A DNA stretch of 64,000 nucleotides from Dimorphilus gyrociliatus (taxonomy: Eukaryota; Animalia; Annelida). The stretch covers positions 744,001 through 808,000 of the forward strand of contig CAJFCJ010000017.1 in assembly GCA_904063045.1 (NCBI GenBank). The letters run 5' to 3'. The notes under the pieces were generated by a model, which saw nothing but the letters and a program-made list of their open reading frames with translations, was not told where the DNA came from and searched no databases. Below are positions 1,347 to 55,990 of the stretch, one piece after another. Each line of letters starts with the position of its first letter. Position 1 is the first letter of the stretch. The position numbers were made by a program, and so were the translations under genes.

Positions 1347-3395
1347 ATGGCGCTTACGTGTGCGAGTAAGTAAACAAGTTTTTTGCTTTATTTTGCATAT
1401 TAGTATGTTATTTTTTGCGATTATTAGAATTAACTAATGCATTGTAATGAGAAAGTATAGTTTATAATTTGAAATTTGAAACAAAAATGTGTACAATAAC
1501 AAAAGTCTCACATTGGGCGATAAAAGGATACCGGGTGTATCGCATTCTCTACGTTTGGGTCTCGATAACCACCTGATGCTTATTTTTCAGTAAGTAACGA
1601 AGTTCCCGAACATCCTGTTATTTCACCTGTTTCGGGATGCATTTTTGAAAGGCGATTGGTAGAAAAGTATATAGCTGAAAATGGAGTGGACCCAATGAAC
1701 CATGAAAAGTTAAACGAAGATCAGCTAATACCTGTAAAAAGTGAGTGAGATACGATATATGACGTAACATAGATTATAAATATTAAATACTTTAGCTTCT
1801 ACATTGGTCAAGCCAAGACCACCATCAGCTACGAGCATTCCGGCTATTTTGAAATCGCTACAGGACGAATGGGTTAGTTTGATTTGTATATTGTTACAAT
1901 AAACAGAGGTAATGTAAGAAATTATTTTCTATCGCAGGATGCGGTTATGTTGCACAGTTTCACATTGAGGCAACAACTTCAAACGGCTAGACAGGGTGAG
2001 TGTTCTGAAGATAATTTTAAGTTTAACTTGACGTATAATTGCTTCAATAAATTCCTCAACAGAATTATCTCATGCTTTATATCAACACGACGCGGCTTGT
2101 AGAGTTATCGCTAGGCTTACGAAGGAAGTTACTGCCGCCAGAGAGGGTATTTTTATCTATTGTAATTATTTACTTATATTAAATTGATCAATTTCAACAT
2201 CTATAGCTCTGGCTACGCTTAAACCTCAAACTGGAGTTACACCCGCACAAACTCAGCCGACAGCAACAACAACTGTTGTTGCAGCTGCGGACCAAAGTGT
2301 CGAGGCTCAAACGTCAACAGGCATGACCGAGGAAATTTTAACAAAATTGCAAGATACCGCCGCAAAATTGACCTCAGAAAGAAAGAAACGTGGCAAGACC
2401 ATACCAGAGGGATTAGCGTCTACTGAACAAATTCAATCCTACAGAAAAATTGCTTCGAAAACCTCAAATCACAGTCCCAGCGTTCCAGGTATATTGTCTT
2501 TGGATATTTGCCCTAAGGATACGAATAAGATAATAACCGGAGGAAACGATAAGACCGCTGTTGTATATAATAAAGAAACAGATTGTTTAGTTGCCACTTT
2601 GAAGGGTCATTCAAAGAAGGTCACCCATGTTGTCTATCATCCGGAAGAAGAACTAGCCTTTACTGCTAGTCCAGATCAGACAATCCGCGTCTGGGGAGTT
2701 AAAGAGTCAAAGTGTGCTCACGTGATCAGAGCCCACGAAATGCCAGTTACGGGAATTTCTTTGCATGCAACGGGAGATTATCTGCTATCGTGTTCGCTGG
2801 ATGGTTATTGGGCCTTCTCAGATATAAGAAACGGGCGGGTTCTTACAAGAGTTGGCGATAAAAATTCCTCTGTACCTTTAACGTGCGCACAATTCCATCC
2901 GGACGGTCTTATTTTCGGAACGGGGACTGAGGATTCGACAATAAAGATTTGGGATTTGAAAGAACAGGCTAATGTGGCTAATTTCCCTGGAGATGCGGGG
3001 CCTATAACGTCCATTTCATTTTCGGAGAACGGTTATTACTTAGCGACGGCTGCTGATGATTCGACAGTAAAGTTGTGGGATTTACGTAAATTGAAAAATT
3101 TCAAGAATATTCAATTAGATGAGGGTTATGAGGTAAGGGTTTATTTATTAAAACATCCCGACTAGTTCTAAACAAGTTTTCTCGTTAGGTGAAATCTTTA
3201 TGCTTTGATCATTCTGGATCTTATTTGGGCGTAGCGGGAACGGATGTTCGAGTTTACGTTTGCAAACAGTGGTCGATGGTAAAGAGCTTTTACGATCATA
3301 CAGCTACGGCTACGGGAATAAGATTTGGTGAAAACAGTAACTTTATTGCGTCAACTGGAATGGATCGAGCCTTGATGTTTTACGCAGAAGGATGA
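1347..3395 (+). CDS. PRPF19: Pre-mRNA-processing factor 19 (U-box, coiled coil, WD40), multi-exon
   Basis: ATG at 1347 (MALTCA, donor gtaagt at 1366). Exon from 1591 encodes [35 protein letters not shown] (U-box). Middle exons give [53 protein letters not shown]40 repeats lie in 2323-3165 and 3189-3395; stop TGA at 3393-3395. Confidence 0.97.
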
Positions 3396-13604: not shown

Positions 13605-15146
13605 TTGCTCACCTTTAGAAAGGCGCTTTGTGAATTGAGAATAGCTCGTTTAAAAAGTTAACTTTTACCGATAATGGCAAAAATTAAACGACGTCTTTAT
13701 TTATAGTAATTAAGTAAAGACTAAGCTCGAAGCAAAGATATATTTCCTTTCTAAAGTGGTTCCTGGGTCCAAAATTCAATTACTCTAAACCAATACCCTA
13801 TTAAATAAACAGATTATTGTCATGGACGGCGCTTTGAAGCAAAAACCCAGTTATTTTGTTTAGAATCGATTACTCTTGGTCGTAATAAAAATGAAAAGCT
13901 GCGAAAATAATTGGTTTTTGTAATAATATGCCGCCCAAGCAGTATATATATATAACTAATACGGTGGCTACGTTCATTAGAATAAGTAAGAGGGTTTTGT
14001 TATTTAATTAGCACTTCAAACTTGAATAAGTAATATAATCCCACCTGAACTTTGTTATACTACTGAATGGAAACAGTTAAGTTAAGCTATGGTAATGAAT
14101 CCGTTATCCTTGCTAAATGTGTACTTTTAATTTCGTTGACAGGTTACACCCACAAAAATATACGATAAATTAACAATTATACTATCATATAAGAAAAGAC
14201 TTTCATTGTCTACTTAGGTAGCAAAATAGACAGAAAGAGTATAGCTTCTTCAAGTTTTATGTATTTCCTAAATAGTTTTAAGTAAACGATTAAAGAAAAA
14301 GAAGAAAAATTTTTACATTTAACTGACTAGTTTAAATCTTTTATGGACTGTTCCTACGATAATAGATTCTTTATAAATTCGCTTTTATAAGCGGGTTGCC
14401 TTACACAAATCGAAATAGGCTATTTTAATAACATAGTAAAAGAATAAGAATGGGGAACAAGGTGAAGAGAAGAAGAAGAAGAAGAAAAAAATCACTTTAA
14501 CCATTATATAAAAGGGTAAAGAAAAGCCATCCTATTAACCCATATATTTATCTGGCTAAAAGAGTTTATTCTAACATTCTATAAAGAAAAAAGCAAAGTT
14601 GAAATATTTAGATTTCAAGCCTTTTAAAAACAAAAAAAAAAAAAATACCAGTTTTTTTTATCAATATCACCAATTAAATTAGTTTACACTAAAATACAAG
14701 ACGTGACTATACATTTTATTTTTGAATTGGGCAATTTTAATATCGGACGAAAATCGTATAAAAAATATTCAACTTTTTAGTATTAACATCTTTATTACGT
14801 TTATAAGGTTATATACGAAGTTAGAAAGATTTACTAAAGATAATTATATATATATATATATGCATATGTATATATAAACTATCTTATTGTATAACTAATT
14901 TATTTGCATACTGTATACCTTATACTATGATATACATATTTGATTTATTGTATTTACAAGGCATATTTTCTTTACTTTCTATTCTTTAGTATCGATTGCT
15001 GTTAACATCTGTAACAATAAGGTTTTTGTTAATAAATGACTTTGTATTTTTTTTTTCCTTTCTATTTGGTATATAGAAATACTTTGCTTGCTTATGCTCC
15101 CCTTTTTTTTCTCTTTCTTCTTTAATAGTGTCTAAAGATATGTCTT

Positions 15147-15753: not shown

Positions 15754-16149
15754 ATGGCAAATTACAAAGGATATTTTCTTGCTTTTGTACTTCTACTCTC
15801 AGTAACTGACCATGTATTATCAATGGAAGTAAGTTTTTGTACGATTTTAATAATTAATCATTATTTATTTAGTTTTAAAGCTTTTGAAAGTGAAAAATTG
15901 ACAAATTTGGAAATTTTTTCGTTACAGAGGGAAAGTTTTATGGATACTGATATTTCATTTCCAAAGCGTAACCCTTTAACCATTAAACTTTTACGGAGTT
16001 TACAAGGTGCCAGAAGGAAACGTAAGCAACACTGCTGTTGATAAATTTCTAACCTTTAATTAATTCTTATTGTTTTTGCAGGTACAAATTGCTTTGATTT
16101 ATCGGACATGTGTTGTCTCTGGAACGTTTGTCCGAATAATAAGCGTTAA
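15754..16149 (+). CDS. Secreted neuropeptide-like precursor (78 aa), urotensin-II-like ring CLWNVC
   Basis: Exons 15754-15828, 15928-16021 and 16082-16149, with canonical GT-AG sites and matching phases. Translation: MANYKGYFLAFVLLLSVTDHVLSME-RESFMDTDISFPKRNPLTIKLLRSLQGARRKR-TNCFDLSDMCCLWNVCPNNKR*. Contains a signal peptide, KR and RRKR convertase sites, and a Cys-rich C-terminal peptide. Confidence 0.85.
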
Positions 16150-17994
16150 TCTTATTGACTATTCCGGTTAATTAGTTGTTTATTATTTATGTCGTAAATT
16201 GCTAGTTTGAAATAAACGCTCGTGAATGTGCTACTACTATCCGTGCGCAAAGTAAAGCGTTACGGTTTCACAATATATAATTTAATAATTTAATAGTATT
16301 CTAATATTTTCAAAAGAAGAATAGAGAAAACAATAGAGGCTCATTATAGACCATAGTCGACTACTATGTCAAATGTATTAGTTAATCTAATTAACAGTCG
16401 AATAATTAAAAATTGTAACATAAACACTTAATACCAACCATCATAGATTACGGCGGTCTATTTATATTATTTTATGAAAGGAAAATTTGTACTAGTATTA
16501 CTCTAAGCGCAAATATTCTAAGTGTCCCTCTGCCTGAATTATCCTTGTCTCTCTCTCTCTCTCTGTCTCTCTCTCTAAGATAAACAACGACAGATCAATT
16601 TATCCAGGAATGAGAAAGTTTTAAGAATTTATAGAGAATAAATACCTTTTTAATATGAATATTTATCACGATATAGAGTTACTTAGCTAATTAATTCTTA
16701 CGGTAAAAGTAAACTTATATAATGCAAGGAAAAGTTTTCTTAAAGAAAATATAAAAAGACGGAAAGAAAAAAAAGAAAAAGAAAAGTAAAATAAACTTTT
16801 TCCCAAATGGGTAAGAAATAACACCCACTAAGGTTCGGAAAAGGGTGGGAAAGATGTACAGCTCCCTGTTTAGCTCTATAGAACAAAGACGATCGGAAAC
16901 ATCTGGAAAGAAGGGAGAGAAAGTAAATGTAAAAGGCGAAAAATTCTCGCTTCAAATTATGTTTTGTACTGTTTCTCAGATGAGATAATTAAAAAAAAGG
17001 TTATTGTAGTTTGTCATAGTAAACAACGATATATGACACAATGCTAAAAAGAGATATGCAGATATTATGTAATAAATCTTTTAAGAGAAAGGCTAATGTT
17101 TTATGTTGTTTGCTGACTGGAATACCTAAAATAGGTTATTGGTACAGTGACATTTAGCCTATATATGATTAAATGTTTCCATAACAGTATTTACGTCAAA
17201 GGGTATTTATAAGAATAGATAAAGATCTGATTTATATATTCTGAAAGCCTTGAAAACAACACAGAAAAATATTACAAACATCAATAATCCACTAATAGAT
17301 TATTTATTAAAGACGTTTTTAAAGACATTTATTGTATCATTGTTTTTATTATTGTTTGTCTCTTTTTATCTTTGTTTCCCTCTTTGCTATCAATAAACGA
17401 CAAATTTCTTCTAGAATTACGTGTGATTACATCTCATCTTTTCTTCTCTATTCGTATGTTTTCTTCTTTCTATCTTTTTTAATGATCATATAAAATTGTT
17501 ACTTTTCGAAGTAGCGAACACCTCGAAGTTCGTAATTAATTAGGTTTTCAAACGGTAAAGAATTGATTTCAACCTCATTAATGGCTATTGAGTTGTTTGA
17601 CTATTAATTTGAAAGAAATAAACCTATTGCGGATTAATGATCCAAAAGAAAAGTATAGAGTTGCGTACAACAAAAGTTGTTCGCTTCAATTGCTTTTATT
17701 TCATAATCCATTTATTATTTATATATAAGTAGAATAAAAAACTCGAATTATCTGATAGGAGTCGGTCCCTATTTGAAGTCATGTATTAAATTCATAAGTT
17801 CGCTTTAAACAGGGGTACCTGTTCCGCTTTCTAATTAGCAATGAATTTAAAAATTTTACCAGGTGCCTATCAGCAGACATTTTGCTTCAAGAATTTGAAG
17901 AATGTGTTTGAAGGAAATGCGTTTAACCGTCAAATAGCCTTTGAAAGCCTGTATTAATTCAAGATATCACTAGAACTTTTTCTAATAACCCAAC

Positions 17995-19683
17995 ATGACA
18001 TCGAAGTTCAAGCAGAAAACCATTCCAGTTCGTGTTTCGACAATGGACGCTGAGCTTAGCTTCAGCATCTCCTCTAAAACCACTGGCCAAGAACTTTTTG
18101 ACCTAGTTTGCAGAACGATTGGTTTAAGAGAAACATGGTATTTTGGGCTTCAATACTCTGACAATAAAGGATTTATAAATTGGCTTTGTCCAAAAAAGAA
18201 GATAGTCGAACAAGACCTTCCTCAAAGTTTTCCTGTTCAACTGATGTTTTTAGTCAAATTTTATCCGGAAAAGATAGAAGATCTCATTCAGGATATTACA
18301 CAACACTTATTCTTTCTACAAGTCAAACAGTCAATCATTAATATGGACATAGAATGTTCTGCCGAAGCAGCTGTTCTGTTAGCGTCGTATGCAATTCAAG
18401 CTCACTTTGGAGATTTCGATCGAACTGTATATAAACTTGGTGCTGTCTTTGCTCCGGAAGATCTTCTACCAAAGAGGGTGTTGGAGCAATATAACATGAC
18501 ACCTGCCATGTGGGAAGAGAGAATAGTAATATACTGGAGAGATCACGTCGGCTTTCCCCGAGAGGACGCAGAGCTGCACTATCTAAAGTTAGCTCAAGAT
18601 TTAGAAATGTACGGTATTAACTATTTCCAAATTCGAGATAGAAAAAATATTGATCATTGGTTGGGGGTGGATGCACACGGGATCCATTTATATGATATCG
18701 ATAAGAAATTAACGCCGACATACTCATTCGGCTGGAATAGTATTCAAACTGTTACGATCTCAGATAAAAAGTTTACTGTAAAGTTTGTAGAAAAAATTGA
18801 CGATATGAAAGAATATGTTTTTTTCACATCGAAATTGAAAATTAATAATCTAATTTGGGAATTGTGCAAAGGTAATCATGAATTATACGATCAACGAAGA
18901 AAACCGGAATCAATGGAAATACAACAAATGAAAACTCACGCAAACGAAGAGAAGGCTAGACGCCTTCAACAATTGGAATTTGATAAGAAAAGCAGAGATA
19001 GAATTTTGGAAGAAAAACGTGACTTGGAACAAAAATTGACTCTTTTACAACAAAGACTAGCGCAGATGGAAGAGGAAATTAGTACCGCGTACGATGCTTT
19101 ATCTCGATCGGAAGAAACAGTTGAATTACTCGGTGATAAAAATAGACAATATGAACAAGAGATTAGTTTATTGAATTCGAAATCAAAAGAAGCTTTAAGC
19201 TTAGTTGAAAAGATCCAACAGGAAAATATTTTATTACGTATTAAAGTCGCGAATGGCGAGAGATTAGCCATTGGTAAGTTGCAATCTGCTCTAGTATTCT
19301 TTTAATTAACGGTCTTAAATAATTCAGGTATCTTTGAGGAATGCGAGCAGCGCGGCCAGCTTATCGAAAAGCTTCGCCAAGAGAACGATAAATTAAGGAA
19401 GAACAGTGAAGCCGAACGTCAAAGGCGTCTTCAAAGCGACCCTTCTCTTTTATCACCCCTGCCGCCGTTCGAAACACCCCTGACTGATAATTTAACGCTA
19501 GAAATGGAAAGGGAAAGAGAGGATTATATTCAAAAAAGTAATAATTTAAAAGAAAGACTCGAAAATTTACGTTCAAATATAGAAGTGTTAAAAGTTGAGG
19601 ACAGTTCCTTATTAGGGGAAGAAGTTGATGAAATTCAGTCAGGAACGACTATGGCCCGTGTAGCTTTCTTTGAAGAGTTGTAG
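17995..19683 (+). CDS. NF2: Merlin (NF2) homologue, ~544 aa, two coding exons
   Basis: FERM start LFDLVCRTIGLRETWYFGLQY; blue-box-like YNMTPAMW (the Merlin type, not ERM). One 54-nt intron at 19274-19327. C-terminus RVAFFEEL* is the same as in vertebrate merlin isoform 1. Confidence 0.95.
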
Positions 19684-19985: not shown

Positions 19986-20870
19986 TCAACCACTCGTTCC
20001 GCCGCAACTGCTACATAATGACTCACACGATGCCAAATGATTGTCATAGTCTTCTTTCATTTTGAAAATTTCTTCACATTTTTCACAAGTATATATATAC
20101 TGAGTTTCGTCTTTCAATTCGTCGTCGTTCTTATGCTCATATTGTAAATGTTCATCAAGCACGCGCATATTCTCAAATGTTAAATTGCAAATTGAACAGG
20201 CAATCGATTTTGAAACTCTAGCATTTGCGTGTATGTAATAATCTCTTGTATAACTATGCCGATCTGTAAATGTTTTATTGCATATTTTACAATAATACAG
20301 CTCAGATGATTCAGCTCTTTGTCTGATAGATCTGTTAAAAGTATCATCTTCAGATGTTGAATAGTGACGACAAACTTTTTCGTGATTTTTCAAATGAACT
20401 CTATTCCTAAATGTCTTTCTGCAAGGTCTACAATAGAACTTTTCTCGATCTTTCGTAAATAGTCTACCCGATTGGCCTTTGCCATTGGCTTCTTCATTAT
20501 TCAATTCCTCAGATTGAAGATCGCTACCACTGTTGTTCAAGAAACGAGCATCTCTCCATTTTTTTGTTTTACGCTTCGGCTTCTCAACTGATGAACTTAG
20601 GACAACCTCAGGTATAACCATTTTTACAACTGGTGTATCACAGGTATCATTATTCCTGACGCTTATGTACTCAACTCGATCTTTCGGTGGACCTATAGCA
20701 CTTTCGTTAACATTAACTAATGCTACTTTTTTTTCATCTACAGTCACTGCAAGAAAACCTTCAATCCTAATAGATTGTTCGCATTCTAGCATGTTACGAC
20801 TAAGCGCTGCAATTACTTCGCTTATGCAGTTTTGTACTCTAGTACGAGTGGATGCTTCTACGAAATCCAT
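19986..20870 (-). CDS. C2H2/C2HC zinc-finger protein with a compact N-terminal alpha/beta domain; single coding exon
   Basis: Splice acceptor cctgcag lies just before ATG 20870 (MDFVEA..), so the ORF-track start at 20897 is intronic. Four dispersed fingers: CRPC..H..C, CKIC..(D)..H, CSIC..H..H and CEKC..H..C. A 5'-UTR donor is near 21032. Confidence 0.85.
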   Translation of the reverse strand: MDFVEASTRTRVQNCISEVIAALSRNMLECEQSIRIEGFLAVTVDEKKVALVNVNESAIGPPKDRVEYISVRNNDTCDTPVVKMVIPEVVLSSSVEKPKRKTKKWRDARFLNNSGSDLQSEELNNEEANGKGQSGRLFTKDREKFYCRPCRKTFRNRVHLKNHEKVCRHYSTSEDDTFNRSIRQRAESSELYYCKICNKTFTDRHSYTRDYYIHANARVSKSIACSICNLTFENMRVLDEHLQYEHKNDDELKDETQYIYTCEKCEEIFKMKEDYDNHLASCESLCSSCGGTSG

Positions 20871-21060
20871 ATTCTGCAGGTAGGACGCTAAGTGCATTAG
20901 GTTAAATGATGAATGATTGTTTACTTACTATACAGTAATTGTTAATTATTAGAATTACAAACACTGAATATAACGTCGTACTATCTTTTTATATATAGAG
21001 AGAGTTTCTGTTTCCAATGTATAATGCTCCTTACGTTCCTGATTTATACTCAAGTTGTTT

Positions 21061-24909: not shown

Positions 24910-26690
24910 ATGGCAGAGGCAATAGCTCCTCCAGCATCGAAACCTTCTGATAGTCAAATATCAGAAAGGTTTGATATCATTTTTACGAAAGCTTTAAAAT
25001 TTGTAAGTGAAGCTCTACTTAAAGATGAAGAAGGTATTATTCAAGAAGCTATTGATCTTTACAAAACAAGCTTAATCTTTATTGAAGAAGCATTAGGAAT
25101 TAGTAGAGGGTCAACAGAGGGAAAAAAGAAAAAACTAGAATCTGCAAAGAAGAATGTAGTTGATAGATTAAAAATTTTAAAAAATCAGCAACCGCAATCG
25201 AAATCAAACAATTTACAAAATCAAGAGAATGAACTATTAGAAATTATGGAAATTGATGGTATTGAAACAGCTACAAGTGATGAAAATTGCAATGCCACTG
25301 AATTATTAGCTATCTCTGAGGCTCAGATATTTTATATTTCTGCCGATGGTCTTGTTTCGGCTCCTTCGTATCCATCCAAGTTAGGAATATACAAATTTCG
25401 AAATGAAGCAGATAGAATTAGAACTGGAGCTCCTGCTTTTCTTAAGGTTGGATCATGGACATATCCATTAGTACCAAATCAATCTCCATCTTTACAATCA
25501 ATTTGGGGAGCTTATATGTTTCCAGATTTGGAAAAAGGGGTTGATCATGCTATAGGTGTTATCTTACCAGACAACACCACGCTAACTGATAGACAAACCT
25601 TTGAGAATTTGATTAAAGAGTATTCTATGCTAAGTATTGAAGAGGGTGAAGAAGCCGTTGAAGAATCTGAAGATAAGTATCAAAGATTAGAACACAAAAG
25701 GGGTAGTGAAAAAGTTGCTGAAGGAATAGAGAGAAGTAAATATATATCTTTATTAGAATCTAAATAGCCTACATTTGTTATTAATTACAGCCGCCGAATA
25801 TATTGCGAAAGGTGTTGATTTTGGGGTTCATAAAATAAGTGGATGGCTACTCAAGGGTAAGGTGTCATAGTGTTTTAATAACTTAAAAAACGAGAGAAAT
25901 AAATACCAATTAAACATTCTAGGAGGTTCAGCAGTCAGAGATAGGATGGCACCTACTGAAAAAGATGTCCAAGTACGTCCAGATGTTCAAAAGGGTCTAA
26001 AAACTATTCGCACTTGTAGTAAAGCTGCAGTTTCAGTCTCCTCAACTATTGGTAAACCACTTCATTTAATCAGAAAATTGAATAGCAATTCCATGTCTAT
26101 TTAGTTAGCTGCGTAGGATCTGCAACGAAACATTTAGCAGTATACGCTGCTCCTCACCTTCGAAAAGGGGCTGAGAAAGTGTTACCCAAGAGTTGGACTA
26201 CCCCAAAGGAGAATCAAGAGTGCTCAAAATTAGACGATGCATTATTAATTGGAGCTCACGGGGTTCAAGGAGCTGTTACAGTATACTTAAGTCTAGAACA
26301 TGCGGCGTTTACATTAGCAAGAGGGTTAGCCGATGAATCAGTGAAAACAGTTAAACACAAGTAATGTTAATAGTTGATATTAAATGCTGTTTTTTTCTAT
26401 CATCCTTTTATCATTAGATACGGAGAACAGTCTGGAGCGGCAACTGAAGACGCTTTATATAGCGCAGTCAATATAGGCATGACAGTTAACAATGCAAAAA
26501 AGTAAGGCTATAATTAAAAGATCTTTAAAATAATTATTAATCCTATCTTCTTTCCCTGTTTTCTCTTAGTCTTGGAGTTAAGGCAGTAGCAAAGCGAATA
26601 GCAAAAGACACTGGAAAGGAAGTTGCTAAAGACCTTATTAAGACTCGTACGGAAATGGATAAACCTGGTAGTTCGAAAGATGCTTTGTAA
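24910..26690 (+). CDS. SPART: Spartin paralogue B (MIT domain plus senescence domain), full length
   Basis: MIT-like helices (KALKFVSEALLKDEEG..AIDLYKTSLIFIEEAL), QIFYISADGLVSAPSYPS, SLEHAAFTLARGLADESVKTVKHKYGE and final exon LGVKAVAKRIAKDT. Stop at 26688-26690. Confidence 0.93.
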
Positions 26691-31665: not shown

Positions 31666-33762
31666 ATGGCGACAGCTACGAAAGCCGATGTCAAGAAATG
31701 GCCTAACAACAAGGAGGAATATGAATTACATCATGTTATAGGTAGAGAGCTATCTTTTAAAATAATAATTAACTCTATGACATTGGTTTTGTAACACAAC
31801 AGTGTTTTGTTTAAGAGAAAAATAAATATTATTCTTTTCTCCGGGATATAATTATCTTTCATATATTTAAGGTTTATTTTTATAACCAAGTCTCTAAATG
31901 TAGCTTTTGTTAAATAAAAGTCTAACAATAATTTCAAAGCGATCGGTAAAATTGCTTATCTGTGTAGGAGCGGGAGCAACGGCCATAGTTCAATCCGCCT
32001 ACTGTATACCCTTAAAGGAGAGATGCGCTATAAAGCGAATAAACCTAGAAAAATGCAACACCACTCCAGAGGAATTAGGGAAAGAAATACATGCTATGAG
32101 TCAATGTAATCAAGAGAATGTCGTTAGTTATTATACTTCGTTTGTTGTTAAGGATGAGTTATGGATGGTAATGCAATTATGCGGTGGTGGTAGCCTCTTG
32201 GATATTATAAAATTTAGAATCAAACAAGGCGAAAAATATAGGCATGGAGTTATTGATGAAATTACTTTAGCTACTGTTATGAAAGAAGTACTCAAAGGTC
32301 TTGATTATCTCCATTCAACAAATCAACTGCATAGAGATATTAAGGCAGGCAATATCCTATTATCAGAGGATGGTTCCGTTTTAATAGGAGATTTCGGTGT
32401 TAGTGCCTGGCTAGCAGATTCCTCAACAAATTCTAGGGGAGAGAAAGTAAGACATACATTTGTTGGAACTCCCTGCTGGATGGCACCTGAAGTTATGGAA
32501 CAAGTTGCTGGATATACATACAAAGCCGATATCTGGAGTTTTGGAATTACAGCCATTGAATTAGCCACTGGAACTGCACCCTATCATAAATTTCCACCAA
32601 TGAAAGTTCTCATGCTGACTTTGCAAAATGATCCCCCTGGCCTTGATACTGGAGTAACTGATAAGGAACAGTATAAAGCATACAGTAAAGTTAGTACGAC
32701 CTTTATAACAATTGAAAAAAATTCAACTATTACAATTTACACAATGATCTTGAAAAAAGTTATGAGTGCTATTATTTCAGATGTTTCGCAAAATGATAAG
32801 TGATTGTCTCAGAAAAGATCCAAGTAATAGGCCTACTGCCCATCAACTCTTGAAACACGAGTTTTTCAAAAAAGCAAAGGTGCACTTAGATTTTTTTTTA
32901 TTAAGTGTTCAAGAGCTTTTAGCTTGAACAAATTTTTTTTAATTGTTATAATATTTTTTACTTATCAGGATAGGGATCATATTCGAAAATATCTCCTGAG
33001 TGATTTATCCCACGTTCAACAAGCAAAGGTTAATATATTTTTCATTAGCTAAACTTGCAATAAAGTAATAATAATATTTCAGCCAAAACGTGTACCAGGG
33101 TCTAGTGGCCGCTTGCATAAGACTGAAGGTGGTACTTGGGAATTTTCTGATGATGAAATGGATAAAAATTCTGAAGAAGGAAAATTAGCATGCAACGACG
33201 AATCAAGAGTGAGAAAACCATTTGAAACATATATAAGTACTTTTTAAATGTTAGATCAAAATAATGCAGACTCCACGTGTGAAAGAAGCTTCCCCAGTCG
33301 AGGAGGAGGAAACAGCAGCTCCAGTACCAGAAGCAGCTCCAGCTGTTGGTTCAACGCCCCTTAACTTTGTTTTGAGACTGAGAAATACTAAAGGAGAATT
33401 AAATGATATAAAATTTGAGTTCACCAGAGGACAAGGTAAATGATCTACTTTCCAAACTTCCAACAATTTAATGGAATGAAAATGAAATTGTTTAACAGAT
33501 ACTGCAGATAGTATATCTCGGGAATTAGTGGAGGCAGATTTAGTTGATGGAAAAGACATGATAGTAGTTGCAGCAAATCTCCAAAAGCTATTGGACAGTG
33601 ATGAGAATACTAAAAATGTTACTTTTGCCCTGGTTAGAAACAATTTGTTAAGAGATTTCAAATTAAACATGTTTTTGTTTACAGAATTCTACCGGAAATG
33701 TAAATGAGAAGCAAGACGAAAAGGCACTGCACGGCTTTGCCCAATTATCGCTTTTAGACTGA
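31666..33762 (+). CDS. OXSR1: STE20-family kinase OXSR1/STK39 (OSR1/SPAK/Fray orthologue)
   Basis: Starts [21 protein letters not shown]. Kinase motifs [11 protein letters not shown] and [14 protein letters not shown]; S-motif [15 protein letters not shown]; CCT domain [26 protein letters not shown]. Confidence 0.95.
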
Positions 33763-44383: not shown

Positions 44384-47300
44384 TCAGACTGTACTTTCGT
44401 GCCGGTACTAAAACGTAAAAAAAAAGAATAAAATTATCCTTTGTTGGTCATTAATTTCAATTATAAATAATACATACCTCAGCACTTTGGGGCTTATCAA
44501 TAGCAAAATGAGGTTTTGAAATTCTAGTTCCACCTTCAGTTATGATACTCTCATCGAAGAAGCTAGAATTTCTCGATTGATGGCGTGATGACGGTCTTAA
44601 TAGATTATCCACACTGAGATTGAAATCTCCCGATTCGAAACTTGAATTTAATGATTTTACTTCGTATTCTTGGATAAGTCTATTTACATCTTCATCAACG
44701 TCACTCATTTCCGATAAAGCCAATTCTTCGCCATCCGTTTCCGTGTCAGTACAAGTCGTAGTGCCGGTATCGTGTTCGAATTGCTCCATTAAGTATGGAA
44801 TTTTAGAGGCGTCCAAACCGACTTTCAAGGCTTCTATAGTAGCGTACTGACCTCTATCTTTCCACCAACGTCTCATCATTTGTTGTACCTGATTTGGCAA
44901 ATAACCGGACCATTTCATGCGAATTTCTTGAATCATTCTCCTTGTCGAAGCTTCAGGTTGACGTTGAGCGAATAATGAGTAAGCCAAATCTTGCCAGTTT
45001 GAACCAACTTTGAAGAAGATTCTTCTTCCAGCAAGGTCTAATTCAGTAACAATCTTTGTCTTTCCTCTTCTCGTTTTCTTCTTTCGACGTCTTACTGCTC
45101 GTCCTCGGACAATTACCCATTGCGGAGTTAGTTTATTGTCGTCTGGTTCTGGAAGTTCAACTTTAGGCGCATTTAGTACTTCCGCTGGAATTCTTGATCT
45201 AGCTGGAATGAAAACTTCTGAACTCGTCGATTGACGGTTCAATCTGACGTCCTCTGGAATGTCATTAACCATAGTCATATACATTGTTTTTGACTTTTCA
45301 ATCGGTGGAGGGGGTCCAATTCTATCAGCAAATAGTTTGGCTGCCAGACCAAATTTTGTGTAATCTATCTCAGCAGGCTTTTGATTTTCATCTCCAATAT
45401 AAACTGGAGGTGTTGTATCATTAGTATGAGGTGTTGAAGGTTGTTTTTCAGGAAAGCCCATACGTCTAGGCATTAACGGCCTCCTAGGGAGGGAATTAAT
45501 AGGATCCAAGTCACCTCGTGATTCATCAAAACCTTCTGTATCGGCTTCGCCTTCGCTTTCAAATCTATTAGGCCTACTTCGCATTCCAATATCTCCATCT
45601 TCGTATCGTCCATGATGTCTCAAAATAGATTTTCCTGATTGATTCCCTGAATTTTGTCTGTAAATTCCACTGGGCTGCGATTCATCGTATAAACTGTCTG
45701 AATTTCTATTCATACCAGGCTCATTTTCAGATAATCCTGCAGGTGAGAAAATAAACAATAAATGATAAATTCAGTATAATTTCGTAAGAAAAAAAGAAAA
45801 CAATCATCATTTAATGTAATTTGTTACTGATAAAAAATTAATATCCGAAAGGCGTACTGAAGCACTTCATGCCGCCACAAATATTGTAAAAAAGAGGTAT
45901 ACTGCTATAATACAAATAGACTAAATGATGATAAAATAATAACAAAGATATTGAGAAAATAAAATAATATAATAAAATACAAAAATAATAAAAAATTGAT
46001 TTACACGTGGCCACAAAAAGATTTTTAATCTCTTTAAAAGGCGTGTTTCAGTGCACCTTTATTAGTTTTCTTTCTCTCGCTCTCTCTCTCACTCTCGCTC
46101 TATTTTTAATATTGTTTTATGATAATATATATTTGATTTTAGTCAACTATCATTCTCTAGGTAAATCATAATCAAGTGTGAGAATCTAGTTTAGATTATC
46201 TAGGGATAATTAGGTATTATTTTACTAACTGCTTGATTGATTTGAGGCTGTTGATCCTCTTGTTTGTTTTGGCATTTGTCGTACTTGTGTAGGATCAGGC
46301 TTTGTATTTGACCATGAATTGGCTAGCATTTTATGGTATAGAGACGCTGGAGTCTCTTTCTCTGCAGTTATTTGTTCATTATCATCTTTACTTAAAGGTC
46401 TCTCAGAAATATTACTTGTAGGTAAATCGGAATCAATATCTGTTTCTCTAACTCTTAATTTTGGTGAAGTACTTTTTAAATCTTCGTCACTTAACAAAGT
46501 CACAACGGGCAAAACTTCTCCGTATGCATCTATTAATTGACCTTTATCATTTACGGGTTGACCATAATCATTAAGTAATTGTCCTTTTTCATTAACAAAT
46601 TGGCCCCTTTCGTTTATTAATTGACCTCTGTTATTTATCATGCGACCTTGTTCGTCTACTAGGAATCCTTTTTCATTTACTAATTGACCTTTTTCATTTA
46701 TTAGTTGACCTAGTTTGTTAATCAATTGACCTTTTTCATTGATCAATCTTCCATTGTGATCTATTAATTGACCTCGGTTGTTGATTAAGTGACCTCTTTC
46801 ATCGACTGGTCTTCCGAAACCGTCGATCAGTTGTCCCTGCTCGTTTATGAGCCTGCCGAAGCTATCAACTAGCTGACCTTTTTCATTAAATAATTGGCCT
46901 CTGTCCCTATGATGGGGTTCGGTTTCTGGAATTCTAGGGTCTATTATATTACCCTTTTCATCAATTATTTGACCTATTTCATTGATCAGCTGACCCTTTT
47001 CGTTGACTAGTCTTCCTCTGTTATCTATTAACCGGCTCCTAGAATTTCTTTGGTATCCTTGATTGTTTGTGAACCTTTCATAATTTTCAAATTGATGACC
47101 TTGATCAGTTTTTAGTCTTCCGTACTCATCGATCAATTGTCCTTGATCATTTATTAGCTGTCCTTGATCATTGATCAATTGTCCTTGATCATTTATAAGT
47201 TGTCCTCTGTTATTTATCATCCGTCCTCTATCATCAATAAGAATTCCTCTCTCATTGACGAATTGTCCCCTTTCATTAATAAAGTTTTTGACTTCCCTCT

Positions 47301-50300
47301 CTGGTGACACAACATCGCTGCTGCGTCTTTTTAGGAAACTCAGAAAACCTGCTTTACGTTTTGCTTCTTTAACTGTATCAGATCGCTCAACGCTAGAGCC
47401 CATAACAGTCTTTTCTATACCGTAAGGCTGACCATCAGGAGATATAGGGACATCCTGTGCTTCAGATTTACTATCTTTCTTCTTTCGTAAAGAAGGGAAT
47501 TTGAATATTGATTTCTTTTTTGGACTGTCGTCAGGTCCGAAAGATTGTTCGGTATCATCAAAAGTTTCACTTTCTCTATCTTTAGATTTGCTTCTCTTCC
47601 TCCCCTTAAAGAAAGCAGCCATTTTAGAGGCATCCCATGATTTCTCCCTGTCTGTATCTGACAATATCTCCTCATCAGTTTTAGATCCTCTGGTAACTAT
47701 TCCTTCATCATCTGATTTTGCTTTTGATTTCCTAGTTAGTGATGGAAATCCTTTAAAAAATCCTTTACGCTCATTCGTCTTCATAATATCAGTATCTTCT
47801 TGAGCAAATTGTTCGTATGTTTTTTTGTCTTGTGGCTCGGATTTTTTCGCATAAACCGTTTCTGGATTTGTGTTTATAGCACTCGACCAAAGCGCGCTCA
47901 CTACGTGGCTGTCACTCTCCACGTAAGCTCTAGGGGATCTTATAGGCAAGTCATATACCTCATCAGCAGCTGGTGACGTATCTGATTTAGGATTTATTTG
48001 GCCCGGTACGAATTTAACTTCAGTTGGTCTATAAACTCCTCTAACAAACGTCAAGGGTACTGGTTTACGGGCTTCGCCAGTCGGCTTAGGAGGTGTTTGA
48101 TTGGTCGATTCCTCTTTAGCTCTGCGTAGCTGCTCTAATTGCCATTGTTGATCCTCTGTGGGAGATGGAGGCATTATCGGAGGTTCAATAAGCGATTCAG
48201 GTCTAGCAGAATCACTATATATGGTTTTGGACTCATATTCTTTGGGCTTGCTGAATCCTTCAGTTGGTGGATATTGTTCATGTATTTGACCGGTCTGTAA
48301 AAGAGGCTCTTCACTTTGCATAGCGAATGTTGAATCCGATTCCCTTGGAAACAGTTCAACAAGCTGTTCTTTCTCAAGCTTTGTTGGAGAACTTATCGCC
48401 TGAGGTGGAAGTGGGGGTGGATCTCTAGGTCGTCTCTTTGGACTGCCAGTTTTCTGACCTATCGGAGATATTTGAGAGGGAATTGCATTCCTTTGTAGGC
48501 TGGGCGGAGATTCACTTGCAGGTGATGAGGATTGAAGAGGTAGTGCTCTCCTATCGTCAATTTTACGAGGAATGTTTTCGATTGATTCTGATGGCTCCTC
48601 AGCCTCATAAATAGTAGGAGACATTGGAGATTGAGCAATGATAGATTTGGGCCTACCAGGTACGGTGGATTTTGGGCTATCTGGTACAATATAAAATGAG
48701 GACCTCTGCTGATCCGGAGGAGGAGGACAATTGGGTAGTGGAGGAGAAAGGGGTGAAAGGGGTGCACGCTTTCTTTTGTTTTTAGATGTTGGCCTCATAA
48801 TTTGCTCCGGAGCAGGGATATTTAATTCCTCTGAAGAGTTAACTTCGTCATCTGATTCCTCTTCAACAATACTCAGTTTTAAGTTTCTAGGCCTCTTGCT
48901 ACCAGGCTCCTCGGAGAAGTCATTTAGCTTGTATTCAACCTCACCATCACTACTAACAGAAGACGAGGACGAACTATCTGAAGATGATTGGTCAGGTTCA
49001 ATTGGGGCAACTTCTATGCGCTTATCAAGTTCTTTCTCGTCCTCCTCACTTGTTTCTCCACTTTTACTAATCAATTGTATTTCATCATCTAGATTTGTTT
49101 CCGTACATGGTTCAGCCGCTGATTGATATGCTATACCTCCAACTGCAGCTGCTACTGAAGTTGCAAGTATAGGATTGTTCTGAGCAGTTTTAGGAAATGT
49201 TTGATCTTTTTCAACTGCATCAGATTGATATTTTGGAATGTCATCAATATTTGTTTCTAAGTGGCTCGTTCTAGTATCTGGCCTTAGTGGTGAGTCTTGA
49301 GCAGCTTGTTCGTCCTTCAAAAGCCTATTTTCTTCAAAGTCATCAATATTAGTTTCAAAACCTATTTTTTTCATTTCTGAAGCTCTGTCGTCAATTAATG
49401 GCTTCTTAACATCACCACTGACAGGTTTCGTTTCACTGACCACCATCTCAATAGGAGCATTGTCTATGTCAGTTTCTACTGTATGTGTTTTCACATTTTG
49501 TTGTTCAGCTTCCCCAGCATATAGTTCAGGATTTCTTCCTGACCTTGGTTCTCTGGAAAAAACCATCGTTGGATCGTCAATATCAGTCATTAAAAATGGT
49601 TTTCTTTGCTCTTCTTCATGGTAATCAGATTCAGTCGCTTTAGGTTTATTTTCATTGATAGGCAAGTTATCAATATTGGTTTCTTCTAAAACCTTTGTGC
49701 GTGTGTCAGGCTCTTTTATCTTATCAGGCGTTCTACCAGATTTTGGTTCTTTCAAAAGTTCCTCAGGTAGCTGTCCGAATCCTTTATTTTTCTCAGTATC
49801 TTCATGAGAAACTCTTTGCTGAGCTCTTGGAACGTTTTGAGATAATTCTGACGATGAAGAAATATTCGTGGGAAAATCATCAATATTGGTCTCCATATGT
49901 TTCTGAGCACTTTCATCTATTGGCATTGAGCTAACTGGAGGATCATGTCTTCGACCAGACCTCGGTTCCTTATCGAAAACAGTTGAAAGATCGTCGATAT
50001 CAGTTTCAATATGACTTTTTGGTTGAAGGTTTGAAGAATCATCCTCTGGTCTTGACGAATTACTTTGCCAGTTATCGATATTCGTTTCTTGTGGATGATG
50101 TCCAATAGGCTGTTCTGAAAGCTTTTGAACAGCTCTTTTTCCTGATCGAGGCTCTTCAGAATATTCATCAATATTTGTCATAACTAGGCCAAGTCCTTCA
50201 GCAATCTTTTCAGTTTGTTGTTCTGAAACAGTTATTTTGGAACTAGGCATATCGTCAAGATTTGTCTCGTGGACAAAACCTGATTCCAAGATTGGTTGCA

Positions 50301-53300
50301 AATTTTCTCCTTTCACTTTATTTTCACTTCTTAGAGCCGGTTCTATATTTTCTTGAGCGATATCATCGATATTTGTTTCTAATCTATCCAACCTTTCGTC
50401 AATATTAAGTGAGGAGTTACTTGAATTGTCAGTAGATTTATTACTATTGTCTTTAGTCTCAGATATTGTTAACTTATCGGCCTGAATTTCTAGTAATTGA
50501 TTTGAATTTCTATCTATTTCAGTTATAGATAAAACTCTTTGAGGTTCATTAAAATCATCTATATTTGTCTCAATTCCAGCGTATGCTTCTGTCGAAGAAT
50601 ATTGAGTATGTGGTTGACCGAACTGTTCATAAATATTTACGTTTGTATTCCCTTGTAAACCTTGATTGTGACCTTTAATTGCTGTTTGAGAAGAATCCTG
50701 TGGTTGTGGTTTTGATTTTTCTTGCATTTGTATTTCACGTTGTAAGTAATTTGGTTTTGATTCTTCATAATCATCAATATTTGTTTCCATGTGACGTAAA
50801 TCAGTTTCTTTTGGTGTATCTATTCTTTGTACAGGATTCAACGATGCTTGATCTAAGTCTGTCTCTGTATGCATCTTTATAGATAAAATTTCACCTGCAC
50901 TTCGTTCAACGGTCAAGATTTCATCAACATCTGTGACAAAGTCTTTGTTTTTCGTTCCGTACCAATGTTGACTTTTATTTTTATCGTCTTTGCTTTCTAG
51001 TATGTAAGGATTAGATTGTGACCTATCACGCAGTGACGGTTCGTTATCTATAAGTACTTCATCGTCACTCTCATCAAGGACAGGGACCGACGAAGAACGT
51101 TTTTGTGTACTACCTTCTAAATCAGAGTTTACAGAATGTCTAGAGCTTCTTATTGGAGACCTAGAAATCGGAATGACATCCTCGACTTTGTCTAAAGAGG
51201 AGGAGCTCTTTTTTAATACCATAGAAGATGGATCGTCAACCGAAGTTTCAAGGTAGTTTAAGCCCTCAAGTGTAACACCTTGAGGAATTTCCGGTTCATA
51301 TTCTTCGCTACTGCTAAGATCGTAAGATCTTTCCGATGGGTCAGCTTTCAAACTTATAGATGTCTCATCAATATTATGGGGTCTGTCTACTTTTACACTG
51401 GTTTGTTCCCTTAATACTTCAATTTTCCTCCGTCTTTTTGGTGACCCATCTTCCAATTCTGTTAATTTAAATCCAAGAGCCTCTAATTTATTTTTAACCT
51501 CTTCCGTCTGAAGAACCCCTTCCTCGCCAAATTCTGCCTCACTTTCACTTTCCGTTACAATATCCTGAATTTCTTTAGCTGTATGAGATTCGTAGAGCCC
51601 TATTTTATCTCGTACAGATGCAATGTTTACTCTTTCCTTAAGTTTTCTTGATGACTCTGATGAAACTATTTGCTCATCTTGTTTAGCTAGCTGTTCTTTG
51701 ACTTTAATTTGATCAGCTGCCTCAATATTTTCCGATTTCGCTAAGATAAATGTTTCTCTTTGAGTTAGTTTTGTTTCCTTTATTTGAATTGGTTTACCCT
51801 TGTTTGTTTTATACTCAGCTAACAGTTTTTCAAAGTCAGTATCTAAACTCATAGTAGGTATGTTGGGTCTAGGTTCGTCAAAATTGAGTGACGGAGTTGA
51901 TTTTGCTCCTGATATTGATTCATTTTCCTCCTTTACAATTAAACTACCATCCTCTCTTGGTTTTATTATTAGTCCAAAAGTAAACTCCTCGCCTCCTAAA
52001 ACCTCACTAATTGAATCCATTTGGGATTTGTGAATTTCTGTGGAGCCATGTTCGCTCCTGGGTATAGAGACAAACTCTTTTAAAGCATCAGTGTTAACAT
52101 CAACTTTACCGAATGATTTATATGGTTTGGGTACGGCGGTGGACAAAAGAAGACGGCGATTAGCCGCTCGACGTGCATAGGGCGAAACGTACAAATCTGA
52201 TGTGGACTTTGCACGAACAGTTTGCGAAATAATCGGAGGAGGAGTCGGAGGATTATCGGAGAAAACGCTATATCTAGATATTTCGTTCTCTGAAAGCTCT
52301 CCACCAGATTCAATATTGAGGGGTGGTACAGAGAAGAATTCTCGTCTCGCGATGTCTCTATCATGCATTCTAGCCTTTATATCAGAAATATTCGAAATTG
52401 GGGCTGTTGATGATGAAGAGGACGAAAGGTTATGAATGCTTTCGGGTGTAACGATTACACGTTTTTTGCCACGCGGACTTCTAGATAATAATTCGCGAAC
52501 TTCCATATCCTCTGTCGGTGAACTACACGCAACAGGCGAAATTACACTTTTCTCATTTGAAAACTTAGCGACTTGAGATGTTATCAAGCGAACCTCATCA
52601 TCTGCTGAAATATTCGGTAAGTCATTGCTACCTTTAATTTCCAGCCGCATTCCTAAGTTTTCACTCAATGTCAACATTTCCTCCTTTTCCTCCTCCTTCT
52701 CCCTATACTGTTGTTCCAAATAATGTTGTCTCTGTCCTTGCCCACTGGGTTCTCTTTGATTGTCTTCGCCGACGTCAGTTTTTATATCTTCGGTGGACGA
52801 AGAACTACTAGATACCACTTCGATAAATTCAGCAAAACCTAACTGAGACGATTCTTTAGTAACAGTTTGTACTACATCGTTATCCTGTTTTTCGACAACT
52901 GTCTCCGCTTCAGACGATTCGCTAACAATAGAGCGTCTTGAGGCCGTTGAATCGCTACTTACGGCTCTCGTGATAACGTAACCTGTTGGAGTTCGGTTAT
53001 CGGTCGAAACAAGCCTTTGTGGCCACGCGTTATTATGCTCACCTGCTTTGGAAGACGGATTATTCACTGTCCAAACTTCATCAGGCCTATGCTTTCTTGC
53101 AGCTGCCCTAGGTCGCTGAACGGCATTTCGAAGACTAACATTAGGAGTGAGATCAGGGGAGGTAGAACCATCTTCTACTCTGATACTATCATCAGCTTTA
53201 GTTTTGCATAAAGGTGTCACAGCTTCAGTTCTTGGAGGAGTAGACGGGTGAGATACGTATCGGGGAGTCGGCGTTTTTGGAGTAGAACCAGTATAATCTT

Positions 53301-55990
53301 TTACTGTTTGGAGGACAGCATCGCTCACCTGCTGATTTGGCTCCTCAGATTGTGTTATAGAAGTATCAAAAGATCGAAACGATGCATTGGTAAAGTCAGC
53401 ACTGTAAAAACTGTCAGCATCGTTTCCATTATATACTCCAGCAGATGGCAGAATGACAAGGCCATTTGCATCTAAGAATAGCGGCTTTTTGTCAGCATCA
53501 AAAACCTGTTCTCCATTTTGATCTAATAAAGGTCTGTACCCAATAGTCGTACTTGCAAGAGGCTGCGAGGAGGCTAAAACTGGTTTACCACTAGGATCAA
53601 TTATGGGTTGACCATTAGCATTTGTTGCAATTAATTTTCCAGTGTGCGTTATAAAAATAGGACGATCAAAGATATCAACTCCCTGAATGATCGTAACTGT
53701 TTCTTGCTGAGGTGGTGTTATTTGGAGATTCATTGGACGACCTTCGCCATCAAGAACAACTTTTCCATTCATATCTAATAAGAAAACTCGCCCTTTTGAA
53801 TCTACATATGGTTTATAACCTTGAAGTTTCAGCTGTTCTTCAACTTGCTCAGTAATGCCTGCATTCAGTCTCCTTGTCTTTTGAACTTCTTCTTTCTTTT
53901 TCTTCTTTTCTCTTTGTTTGTCAGCTTCTTTAGCCGCCTCTCTTTCTCGATCTTCTTGTTCAAGTTTTAAACGTTGTTGTTCCTGTTCGTATCTTATACG
54001 TTGCTCTTCTCTCTTTATTCTTTCTAATTCTTGTTTTCTTTTAGCTTTCTCTTCTTCTAGTCTTTTAATTTCCTCTTCTTGTTGTCTTAATCTTTCTTCC
54101 TCTTCCAATCTTCGCAATTCCTCTTCTTCTTGTCTCCTCCTTCGGAGTGTCTCTTCAGCTCGAAGTTTTTCTCTTTCTTTTTCTTCCTCCAATCTCTTTA
54201 ATTTTTCCTCAATTTTTTGCTTTTCTTCTTCTTCCTCTTTCATAAGAAGAATTAATCTATCTTGCCTCTTAGCTAACTCTTCTTCTAATTCCCGCTTTTT
54301 TCTATCTTCCGCGTCTCTTCTATCAAGTTCCTGTTTGTTTAACGATCTTTGAGGTCTTTCTGATCTGGTCTCTGACCTGGTCATTAGTGGTTCATATGCA
54401 GCACCCGTTCCTGTTGATGCATCGTGCAACTGAAGATTCGAAGTTTGAGTTGCATTTTCTCGACTAATATCTAAACCTCCCCTTTGCTTCGCGTCATTTG
54501 GGCCACTTTTCATAGTGCTAGTTTTGTTAGGCTTATTTTGTTGTGGTTGCTCAAATATAGAATTTATAGATGTTCCCGCTGTCATATTTGACATTCTATT
54601 ATGAGGTCTACTGCCGTAGTGGCTAGTATTATAATGTTCAGCTTCAGTGCCCATATAGGCAGAAGTGTCATGAGTTTTATTAAGATGGCGTTTTGAATTC
54701 GGCGAGTGTGTTGAATGATAAATGAGTTCTTTTGGAAGGGTCTGTAAAATAGTTATATTAAAAATTTGGTCAAAATAATTTTTAATCTACCTCTGATTCA
54801 GCAACACTGTATTCCCCAAGAATTTGCTGTAGTCTAACAGTATCCATAGAATTTGAAAGATCAGGATTTCGGGGTCTAGAATGCATAGCATTTTTCAACA
54901 GTTGTTGAGTTACTGTATCGTTCCTTGGTGTTACATCGATAGGTTTTTGCCCTTTAGAATTTTCAATAAAAGGGTTTGCTCCCAGAGCTAATAAAATCTC
55001 CACAATCCTTTGATAATGATTAGCAGCTGCTAAATGAAGAGCCGTCTCTCCATGGATATTTTTATCGTTAATTGCGACTCTATGTTTCAGTAGAATTCTT
55101 GCACAAGCAGTAAAATCATCCTTATCCCGCATTCCTTTTTGGGGTAACCATTCATTTAATACAACACAATGTAGAGGAGTATTTTCGTGGGAATCATTTA
55201 TATCTATGGCAGCGTTAAATTGTTCTATTAAAGCTTTCATGGCTTCTCTATGTCCATTTTCGGCAGTTATGTGAAGAGGAGTTTTTTCACGCCTATCTCC
55301 GAAACATGGCAATTTTATATTAACACAACTAATTTCTCTGGCAGAAAACAACTGTAACAAATGAATATGGCCTTCTCTCGCTGCAATATAGGGAGCAATA
55401 GCTCCATCTTGTCCTTTTTGAAAGACGTCTGCATTGTGATGCAATAATAGTCTAACTAATTGCAAATGGCCATATAAAGTAGCAGTATGTAACGGAGCAT
55501 TTTGTTTAGAGTCTGTTAACTGAGGATCAGCTCCTCTAGAAAGCAACATTCTTGCCATAATTCGGTCTGGTTTCTTAACGGCGATATGTAAGGGGGTCTC
55601 GCGATTATGATCACCAATGTTTGGGTTTGCACTCGCCAACAGTAACAATTCTACTGTTGCATAAAGACCTAAGTCAACACTTATATGTAAAGGGGTAAGT
55701 TTCTCTCGTCGTCTAGAGCTATAAACTGTTTGATGAACGTAATTTGGATCTACTCCTTTTTTCAAGAAATATTCCATTATTCTTGGATCTTCTTGTCGAG
55801 AGGCAAGTATAAGAGGACATGCGAATTTTTTAGTCGGCCTATGTTTGATATCAGCAATGACCAACTTTTGTATTTTATGTTCAGACTTTAATTCTTTCTC
55901 AAATATTGATTTAAGCTTTTCCAAATCATTTTCCCTTATCGCCTCCAAGATATCAGAGCCATAATCTTTAATTACGGTGGTGACACCCAT
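44384..55990 (-). CDS. Giant ankyrin-repeat / disordered / death-domain protein (~3,660 aa) ending in a class I PDZ ligand
   Basis: Phase-compatible exons 54791-55990 (about 9 ANK repeats), 46230-54741 (8,512 nt), 44478-45736 (death-domain-like VGSNWQDLAYSL..QMMRRWWKDRGQYATIEALKVGL) and 44384-44407 (YRHESTV*). The true start may lie upstream at 56484 (see findings). Confidence 0.85.
46519..47283 (-). repeat. Coding heptapeptide repeat array (L/F)-(I/V)-(N/D)-x-x-G-(Q/R)
   Basis: For example LINDQGQ x3, LINEKGQ, LVDEQGR and MINNRGQ; about 30 units in two blocks. Confidence 0.9.
49081..50960 (-). repeat. Dispersed coding repeat ET(N/D)(I/L)D(D/N/E)
   Basis: At least 15 copies counted in the translation, several followed by EP(R/K)SGR. 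Confidence 0.9.

Follow-up and report, generated by a model that had tools for sequence, protein, structure and literature searches.

Gene structure and transcription at the locus

The window, by which is meant the whole 64,000-nucleotide stretch of Dimorphilus gyrociliatus DNA that was analyzed (contig C17:744001-808000), is AT-rich eukaryotic DNA with a base composition of 33% G+C. A small peptide gene is encoded on its forward strand at 15754-16149, in three exons that total 237 nt and specify 78 codons and a stop (Table 1). Instead of this gene, the list of open reading frames at the locus contained a frame of 95 aa that continues through intron 1, and the third exon alone accounts for 21 aa within an open frame of 29 aa. 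The sizes of both introns are ordinary for D. gyrociliatus, in which the median intron is 66 bp.

The start codon has an A at -3 and a G at +4, and the signal peptide has a hydrophobic core, LAFVLLLSV, with a Kyte-Doolittle 9-mer maximum of 3.04. The signal cleavage site, which was judged by hydrophobicity alone, likely lies after VLS. The RRKR site directly precedes the TNC of the predicted mature peptide, for which a monoisotopic [M+H]+ of 2187.81 was calculated with two disulfides and of 2191.84 in reduced form. Inspection of the sequence found no Gly before the C-terminal KR of the precursor, and there is therefore no amidation signal.

Table 1. Features of the window and of related loci elsewhere in the D. 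gyrociliatus genome. Positions without a contig name are those of the window; a slash within a sequence marks the position of an intron boundary.
Feature	Position	Strand	Description
Prp19 WD40 domain exon	2323-3165	+	
Exon 1	15754..15828	+	75 nt; start codon and signal peptide MANYKGYFLAFVLLLSVTDHVLSME; donor GAA/GTAAGT
Intron 1	15829..15927	+	99 nt, GT..AG, phase 0; acceptor ...TTACAG/AGG; joint 15828->15928 in run X3 contig
Exon 2	15928..16021	+	94 nt; propeptide RESFMDTDISFPKRNPLTIKLLRSLQGARRK and first base of Arg codon; donor AAAC/GTAAGC
Internal KR site	15964-15969	+	within exon 2
RRKR site	16012-16021 plus 16082-16083	+	split across exons 2 and 3
Intron 2	16022..16081	+	60 nt, GT..AG, phase 1, inside last Arg codon of RRKR; acceptor TTTTTGCAG/GT; joint 16021->16082 in run X3 contig, 60 nt skipped
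Exon 3	16082..16149	+	rest of Arg codon, mature-peptide region, KR, TAA stop; encodes (R)TNCFDLSDMCCLWNVCPNNKR
Predicted mature 19-mer	16084..16140	+	TNCFDLSDMCCLWNVCPNN; Cys frame C-x6-CC-x4-C
3' UTR	16150..16245	+	AATAAA at 16211-16216; transcript contig ends at 16245
FERM/ERM, moesin-like	17995-19305	+	1.8 kb downstream of peptide gene
C2H2 zinc fingers exon	19986-20897	-	
MIT domain exon	24910-25767	+	
Protein kinase exon	31907-32803	+	
MNC-like paralog	C32:53955-56282 (exon 3 at L032:1499-1567)		predicted; exon 3 at 56214, exon 2 at 55375-55534, putative exon 1 at 53955-54035
Canonical WK gene	C2:4411576		CMWKVCPPSAW; genome pattern search
Canonical WK gene	C22:352166		CIWKVCAPTPW; genome pattern search
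Canonical WK gene	C3:3124394		CIWKICLPNG-RR; genome pattern search
Canonical WK gene	C10:1079118		KR-MYDLG/LCIWKACPPER, phase-1 intron; genome pattern search

Transcription of the gene was evident in a public run from 2017 (run X3), in which one 306-nt contig was 100% identical to the locus, with zero mismatches. The contig matched in three pieces (15782-15828, 15928-16021, and 16082-16245), omitted precisely the 99 nt of intron 1 and the 60 nt of intron 2, with GT..AG ends at both gaps, and ended 34 nt past the AATAAA. A contig without either intron must come from spliced RNA, and the orientation of the splice sites places the gene on the + strand. The contig covered the later part of exon 1, and the full N-terminus is present in a published transcript (PMC7854359). 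Its depth was high (637), though depth cannot rank genes and is a poor measure of expression. Two other runs (X1 and X2) were uninformative for the peptide gene, as they touched only 33 nt near 14989-15021.

These data show that the gene is real, is transcribed and spliced from three exons, and encodes a 78-aa preproprotein. An earlier note on this DNA had proposed the precursor in this three-exon form, staking the proposal on the existence of a spliced transcript; the run X3 contig is such a transcript and agrees with the model to the base. The note was also right that the open reading frame list misreads the gene and that an amidation Gly is absent. The region is AT-rich and short open frames are common in it, so a chance open frame flanked by chance splice-like sites might be suspected, but this reading is refuted by the perfectly matching spliced contig and by the independent published transcript with the full coding sequence (PMC7854359). 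A conserved paralog, described below, also argues against it, and we give it practically no weight.

The five neighboring long exons belong to ordinary housekeeping families, and no relatives of peptide signaling were found among them. Three further frames of 433, 426, and 838 aa (44457-45758 on the - strand, 58368-59648 on the + strand, and 60408-62924 on the - strand) had no Pfam match at E <= 0.001. An uninterrupted frame of 2809 aa was also found at 46225-54654 on the - strand; its sole Pfam match was a DUF3659 stretch near the C-terminus.

Membership in the annelid MNC family

The precursor is already known. The identical 78-aa sequence, named 'MNC-like', is included in the neuropeptide precursor FASTA in supplementary file 5 of Martín-Durán et al. 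(2020, PMC7854359). This entry has a transcript name only and no DgyrP identifier, while many other entries in the file carry DgyrP or genome-guided Trinity identifiers. No match to the 95-aa open reading frame, which contains exons 1 and 2, was obtained when a collection of 5.8 billion proteins was searched by words. Both the missing identifier and the blank search fit a gene that is absent from the gene models. The description of the gene as unannotated therefore holds for protein sets of the gene-model type and fails for the literature, in which the sequence had been published. The precursor appeared in 2020, and the MNC family was named in 2013. What is new is the genomic locus for the published transcript, its intron phases of 0 and 1, and a second paralog that is not on the published list; the transcript is now tied to a locus that seemingly has no gene model.

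Conzelmann et al. (2013, PMC3890597) found six proneuropeptide families in annelids alone, among them MNC, which they defined from Platynereis, Capitella, Eisenia, and Alvinella. At its C-terminal end, the precursor of Platynereis reads ...SKR FQLGQRIN KR HCWDVADVCCMWNVC (file 7 of PMC3890597). The mass spectrometry table of the same study (file 9) includes FQLGQRIN, the spacer that is flanked by KR sites and immediately precedes the Cys-rich peptide; this spacer was the only product reported from the MNC precursor, and the mature Cys-rich peptide was not reported. Detection of the spacer indicates that Platynereis cleaves its precursor in vivo at the KR that adjoins the Cys-rich peptide. MNC transcripts were present in Platynereis at intermediate stages of a 13-stage series (PMC3890597, file 11). 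The alignment in additional file 10 gives the same Cys frame for Capitella and Eisenia, in machine-read text that contains reading errors, and cross-species conservation therefore rests mainly on the Platynereis FASTA. The EST records named by the study are EY614600 for Capitella, EH671930 for Eisenia, and GO201158 for Alvinella. Our genome searches covered D. gyrociliatus alone among animals, and the cross-species evidence was taken from the cited papers.

The MNC arrangement C-x6-CC-x4-C, in a single C-terminal peptide, is present in TNCFDLSDMCCLWNVCPNN as it is in Platynereis HCWDVADVCCMWNVC. The residue pattern C-[W/F]-D-x-x-D-x-C-C-[M/L]-W-N-V-C is also present, and the second D. gyrociliatus paralog has the same pattern. 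A dibasic site stands right before the Cys-rich peptide, and there is an N-terminal signal peptide, as judged by hydrophobicity. From the first Cys to the last, the Platynereis peptide reads C-W-D-V-A-D-V-C-C-M-W-N-V-C and the D. gyrociliatus peptide C-F-D-L-S-D-M-C-C-L-W-N-V-C. Nine of these 14 positions are identical (the four Cys, both Asp, W, N, and V), and the differences at the other five are conservative. The gene very probably belongs to the MNC proneuropeptide family, which is restricted to annelids.

Established prohormone processing, together with the mass spectrometry data from Platynereis, suggests how the MNC-like precursor may be handled. The signal peptide would be removed, probably at the site given above, and a prohormone convertase would then cut, probably behind RRKR and perhaps also behind the internal KR. 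Removal of the C-terminal KR by a carboxypeptidase would leave the non-amidated 19-mer TNCFDLSDMCCLWNVCPNN, which would fold with two disulfides and be secreted as a signaling peptide. The peptide is likely bicyclic, and its disulfides might be paired as C3-C10/C11-C16 or as C3-C11/C10-C16.

A second paralog and selection on the peptide core

When the whole genome was searched in six frames with the peptide of exon 3, one match was obtained besides the gene's own locus, on contig C32. The sequence there reads ...ttccag/GA ACG AAC TGC..., and the predicted exon 3 encodes (R)TNCFDISDLCCLWNWCEPRTDK and a stop and is followed directly by AATAAA. The donor of exon 2, AGA AAA C/GTAAGCA, lies 679 nt upstream of exon 3 and is the same as the AAAC/GTAAGCA of the gene in the window; no other upstream site has two basic codons together with a phase-1 base and GTRWG. 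The predicted exon 2 is 160 nt long with a good acceptor in front and encodes ...SKMRMEHRRK(R), and a putative exon 1, MASARTCLFFCLVFIFISSDYILGSDD, ending in a phase-0 GT, is found 1.3 kb above it. The introns of this paralog (about 1.3 kb and 679 nt) are unusually long for the genome and contain TTC-rich low-complexity sequence. The paralog is absent from the published precursor list, in which the motif CCLWN occurs once (PMC7854359), and the protein word search gave no match to its exon-2 open reading frame within the collection covered.

The peptide of the C32 paralog retains TNCFD-SD-CCLWN-C. Across the 16 core codons shared by the two genes, synonymous differences number 6 among 7.3 sites (pS 0.82, which is saturated) and dN is 0.16, and the two propeptides could not be aligned. 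Together these observations indicate an old duplication, with selection on the mature peptide and drift of the spacer. Purifying selection on the peptide core, which includes Trp-Asn and each of the four Cys, is strong. Retention of the core beside a drifted spacer is the pattern that would usually be expected of a bioactive C-terminal peptide.

Other matches to parts of the gene lacked a comparable context. A genome-wide scan for CC-x-W-x-x-C gave 49 matches, and besides the gene in the window and its C32 paralog, none had an upstream Cys, a cleavage site, or a usable frame. A CFWNVCP match on contig C76 had no peptide-precursor context, and an exon-2-like match in locus L024 fell within a long coding exon that is unrelated. 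Scanning of metagenomes for C-F-D-x4-C-C-x-W-N-x-C produced one match, antisense to a 475-aa open reading frame on a 2.9-kb bacterial-looking contig, and this match was attributed to chance. Repeated pattern matches also brought to light a tandem array at C2:2605045-2605275, which consists of at least 10 perfect copies of the 21-nt unit TGCTGCATTTGGGGTTGATGC.

The conservation of the core bears on whether the product might instead be a secreted Cys-rich effector that is not neuronal, of an antimicrobial, mucus, or toxin-like kind. Such an effector could well be a small secreted peptide with four Cys, and the high depth of the run X3 contig would suit it, with the reservation already made about depth. 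However, prohormone-type dibasic sites flank a single C-terminal peptide, and MNC came from neuropeptide screens, with processing at the site confirmed by mass spectrometry in Platynereis (PMC3890597). Furthermore, the core is strongly conserved between old paralogs and between annelid orders, while defense peptides usually diversify. An effector role is very improbable.

Relation to SSRP-like peptides and other families

The earlier note had assigned the peptide to the urotensin II (UII) family because of its likeness to an Aplysia ring. The note gave that ring correctly: Aplysia apUII is SGGMSLCLWKVCPAAPWLIS, and mass spectrometry has confirmed its disulfide (Romanova et al. 2012, PMC3493602). 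Peptides of the apUII type are now classed among the protostome SSRP-like peptides (Koch et al. 2022, PMC9048919). This group is defined by precursors that have a signal peptide and one peptide at the C-terminus, with a Cys loop of four residues and an aliphatic residue before a WK that is invariant in all of them; in many species the genes have three exons, with one phase 0 and one phase 1 intron and the signal peptide on exon 1 (PMC9048919). For D. gyrociliatus, three SSRP-like genes have been reported, of which two lack the second intron (PMC9048919). In our genome pattern search, four canonical WK loci were found (Table 1), which encode peptides of the pattern C-[MI]-W-K-x-C behind basic cleavage sites.

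If the peptide belonged with these, it would be a bicyclic UII/SSRP-like ligand in which the ring Lys has become Asn or, in a weaker form of the same idea, MNC as a whole would be an old annelid offshoot of an SSRP-like gene. The ring C-L-W-N-V-C-P is one residue apart from the C-L-W-K-V-C-P of apUII, the four-Cys peptide contains the C-x4-C spacing with an aliphatic residue ahead of Trp, and the precursor holds one such peptide only, at its C-terminus. The exon layout is that of SSRP-like genes (PMC9048919), with three exons, a phase 0 and then a phase 1 intron, the signal on exon 1, and the ring on exon 3. Canonical WK genes are present in the same genome, and the signal peptide weakly resembles that of one of them (NYKGYFLAFVLLLSVT versus NHRSRLFGLVLLLAVT). 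This resemblance emerged when the translations of the three exons were compared by tblastn with five WK loci, in a tiny database of seven loci; ring matches and one signal-peptide match with an E of 0.15 were the only hits.

Several observations argue against both forms of this reading. The WK motif is absent from the Cys loop, which reads C-L-W-N-V-C, and the Asn is a conserved residue across MNC peptides, being found in the C32 paralog and in Platynereis MNC. The Pro behind the ring, to which the seemingly close match with Aplysia UII is due, has no equivalent in Platynereis MNC, where the last Cys is also the last residue, and it is shifted in the C32 paralog (CLWNWCEP). Eisenia MNC may lack even the Trp, as it reads CCMSNAC in machine-read text (PMC3890597). 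The first loop, C-[FW]-D-x-x-D-x-C, is as well conserved as the ring, and SSRP-like peptides contain nothing comparable. Intron 2 is equal in phase but not in position, as it splits an Arg of RRKR here and lies at another place in the WK gene on contig C10. No significant propeptide similarity to the WK precursors was found by local tblastn, and annelids possess the MNC and SSRP-like families side by side. We consider membership of the peptide in the UII/SSRP-like family unlikely.

The neuropeptide-precursor claim of the earlier note can accordingly be kept for a real, spliced precursor of the secreted type, with dibasic sites and a four-Cys C-terminal peptide, but not for urotensin-II membership, for which the defining WK motif is missing. 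Nor did the proposed change of Lys to Asn in this lineage stand, as Trp-Asn and all four Cys are common to Platynereis MNC HCWDVADVCCMWNVC and are thus old family traits rather than a recent change of a urotensin ring. The second Cys pair that had been pointed out is present, in the frame C-x6-CC-x4-C, as an old trait of MNC and not as a recent alteration. Trp-Asn and the four Cys are ancestral, selected features of the MNC family.

MNC is mentioned neither by Koch et al. (2022, PMC9048919) nor by Thiel et al. (2021, PMC8557429), so a link between MNC and SSRP-like peptides is neither proposed nor excluded in those papers. Such a link is doubtful; in one form of it, MNC would be an old, bicyclic, Lys-less offshoot of the SSRP-like genes, which would have arisen by an early annelid duplication, gained the second loop and Trp-Asn, and come to act on its own, probably SST-like, receptor. 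If this were true, annelids would have two parallel somatostatin-type systems. The likeness of the ring to somatostatin/urotensin-like peptides also provides concrete candidate receptors for MNC.

Three other families were considered and rejected. Vasotocin-type C-x4-C-P peptides come with a neurophysin domain, which a 78-aa precursor cannot accommodate. Allatostatin-C contains only one Cys loop, of six residues and usually with Asn and FxP (PMC9048919); the first loop of the MNC-like peptide, C-FDLSDM-C, has six residues but contains neither Asn nor Pro, and a second Cys pair follows it. In CCWamide/agatoxin-like peptides there are eight Cys, and the aromatic C-terminus is amidated (Thiel et al. 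2021, PMC8557429), whereas the MNC-like peptide has four Cys and no Gly before the KR. The MNC-like and CCWamide genes both encode short precursors in three exons, of which the last contains the Cys-rich peptide, and in both an intron interrupts the basic cleavage site, but the CCWamide intron falls between the second and third base of a basic codon and the MNC-like intron after the first base.

Compared with the WK genes of its own genome, the MNC-like gene likewise encodes a small secreted precursor with a C-terminal ring peptide, and one of the WK genes has the three-exon, phase 0/phase 1 layout. However, all of the WK genes keep WK and have two Cys only, and there is no significant similarity outside of the ring. 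Intron 2 is located 10 codons before the ring in the MNC-like gene, and five codons after the KR and two before the ring in the C10 gene. The likeness to Aplysia UII and the SSRP-like peptides consists of the C-x4-C spacing, the aliphatic residue and then Trp, and the Val-Cys-Pro past the variable position, along with one peptide at the C-terminus and a gene of three exons whose introns are in phase 0 and phase 1. The MNC-like peptide differs from SSRP-like peptides in having Asn for Lys, two extra Cys that allow a second loop, and a conserved N-terminal C-F-D-x-S-D for which there is no SSRP-like counterpart, and it is missing the Pro/Trp-rich tail (PPTPW, PAAPW).

In comparison with Platynereis MNC, the D. 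gyrociliatus peptide begins with TN rather than H, has F for W in the first loop, and has a C-terminal PNN followed by KR, whereas the Platynereis precursor stops at the last Cys. The D. gyrociliatus precursor is also shorter (78 aa versus about 105 aa), and the genome has a second paralog. In both species, however, a signal peptide is followed by a non-conserved propeptide with dibasic sites and by a single C-terminal peptide, right behind a KR-type site and without amidation, in which Asp is found at +2 and +5 after the first Cys and an aliphatic residue precedes W-N-V-C.
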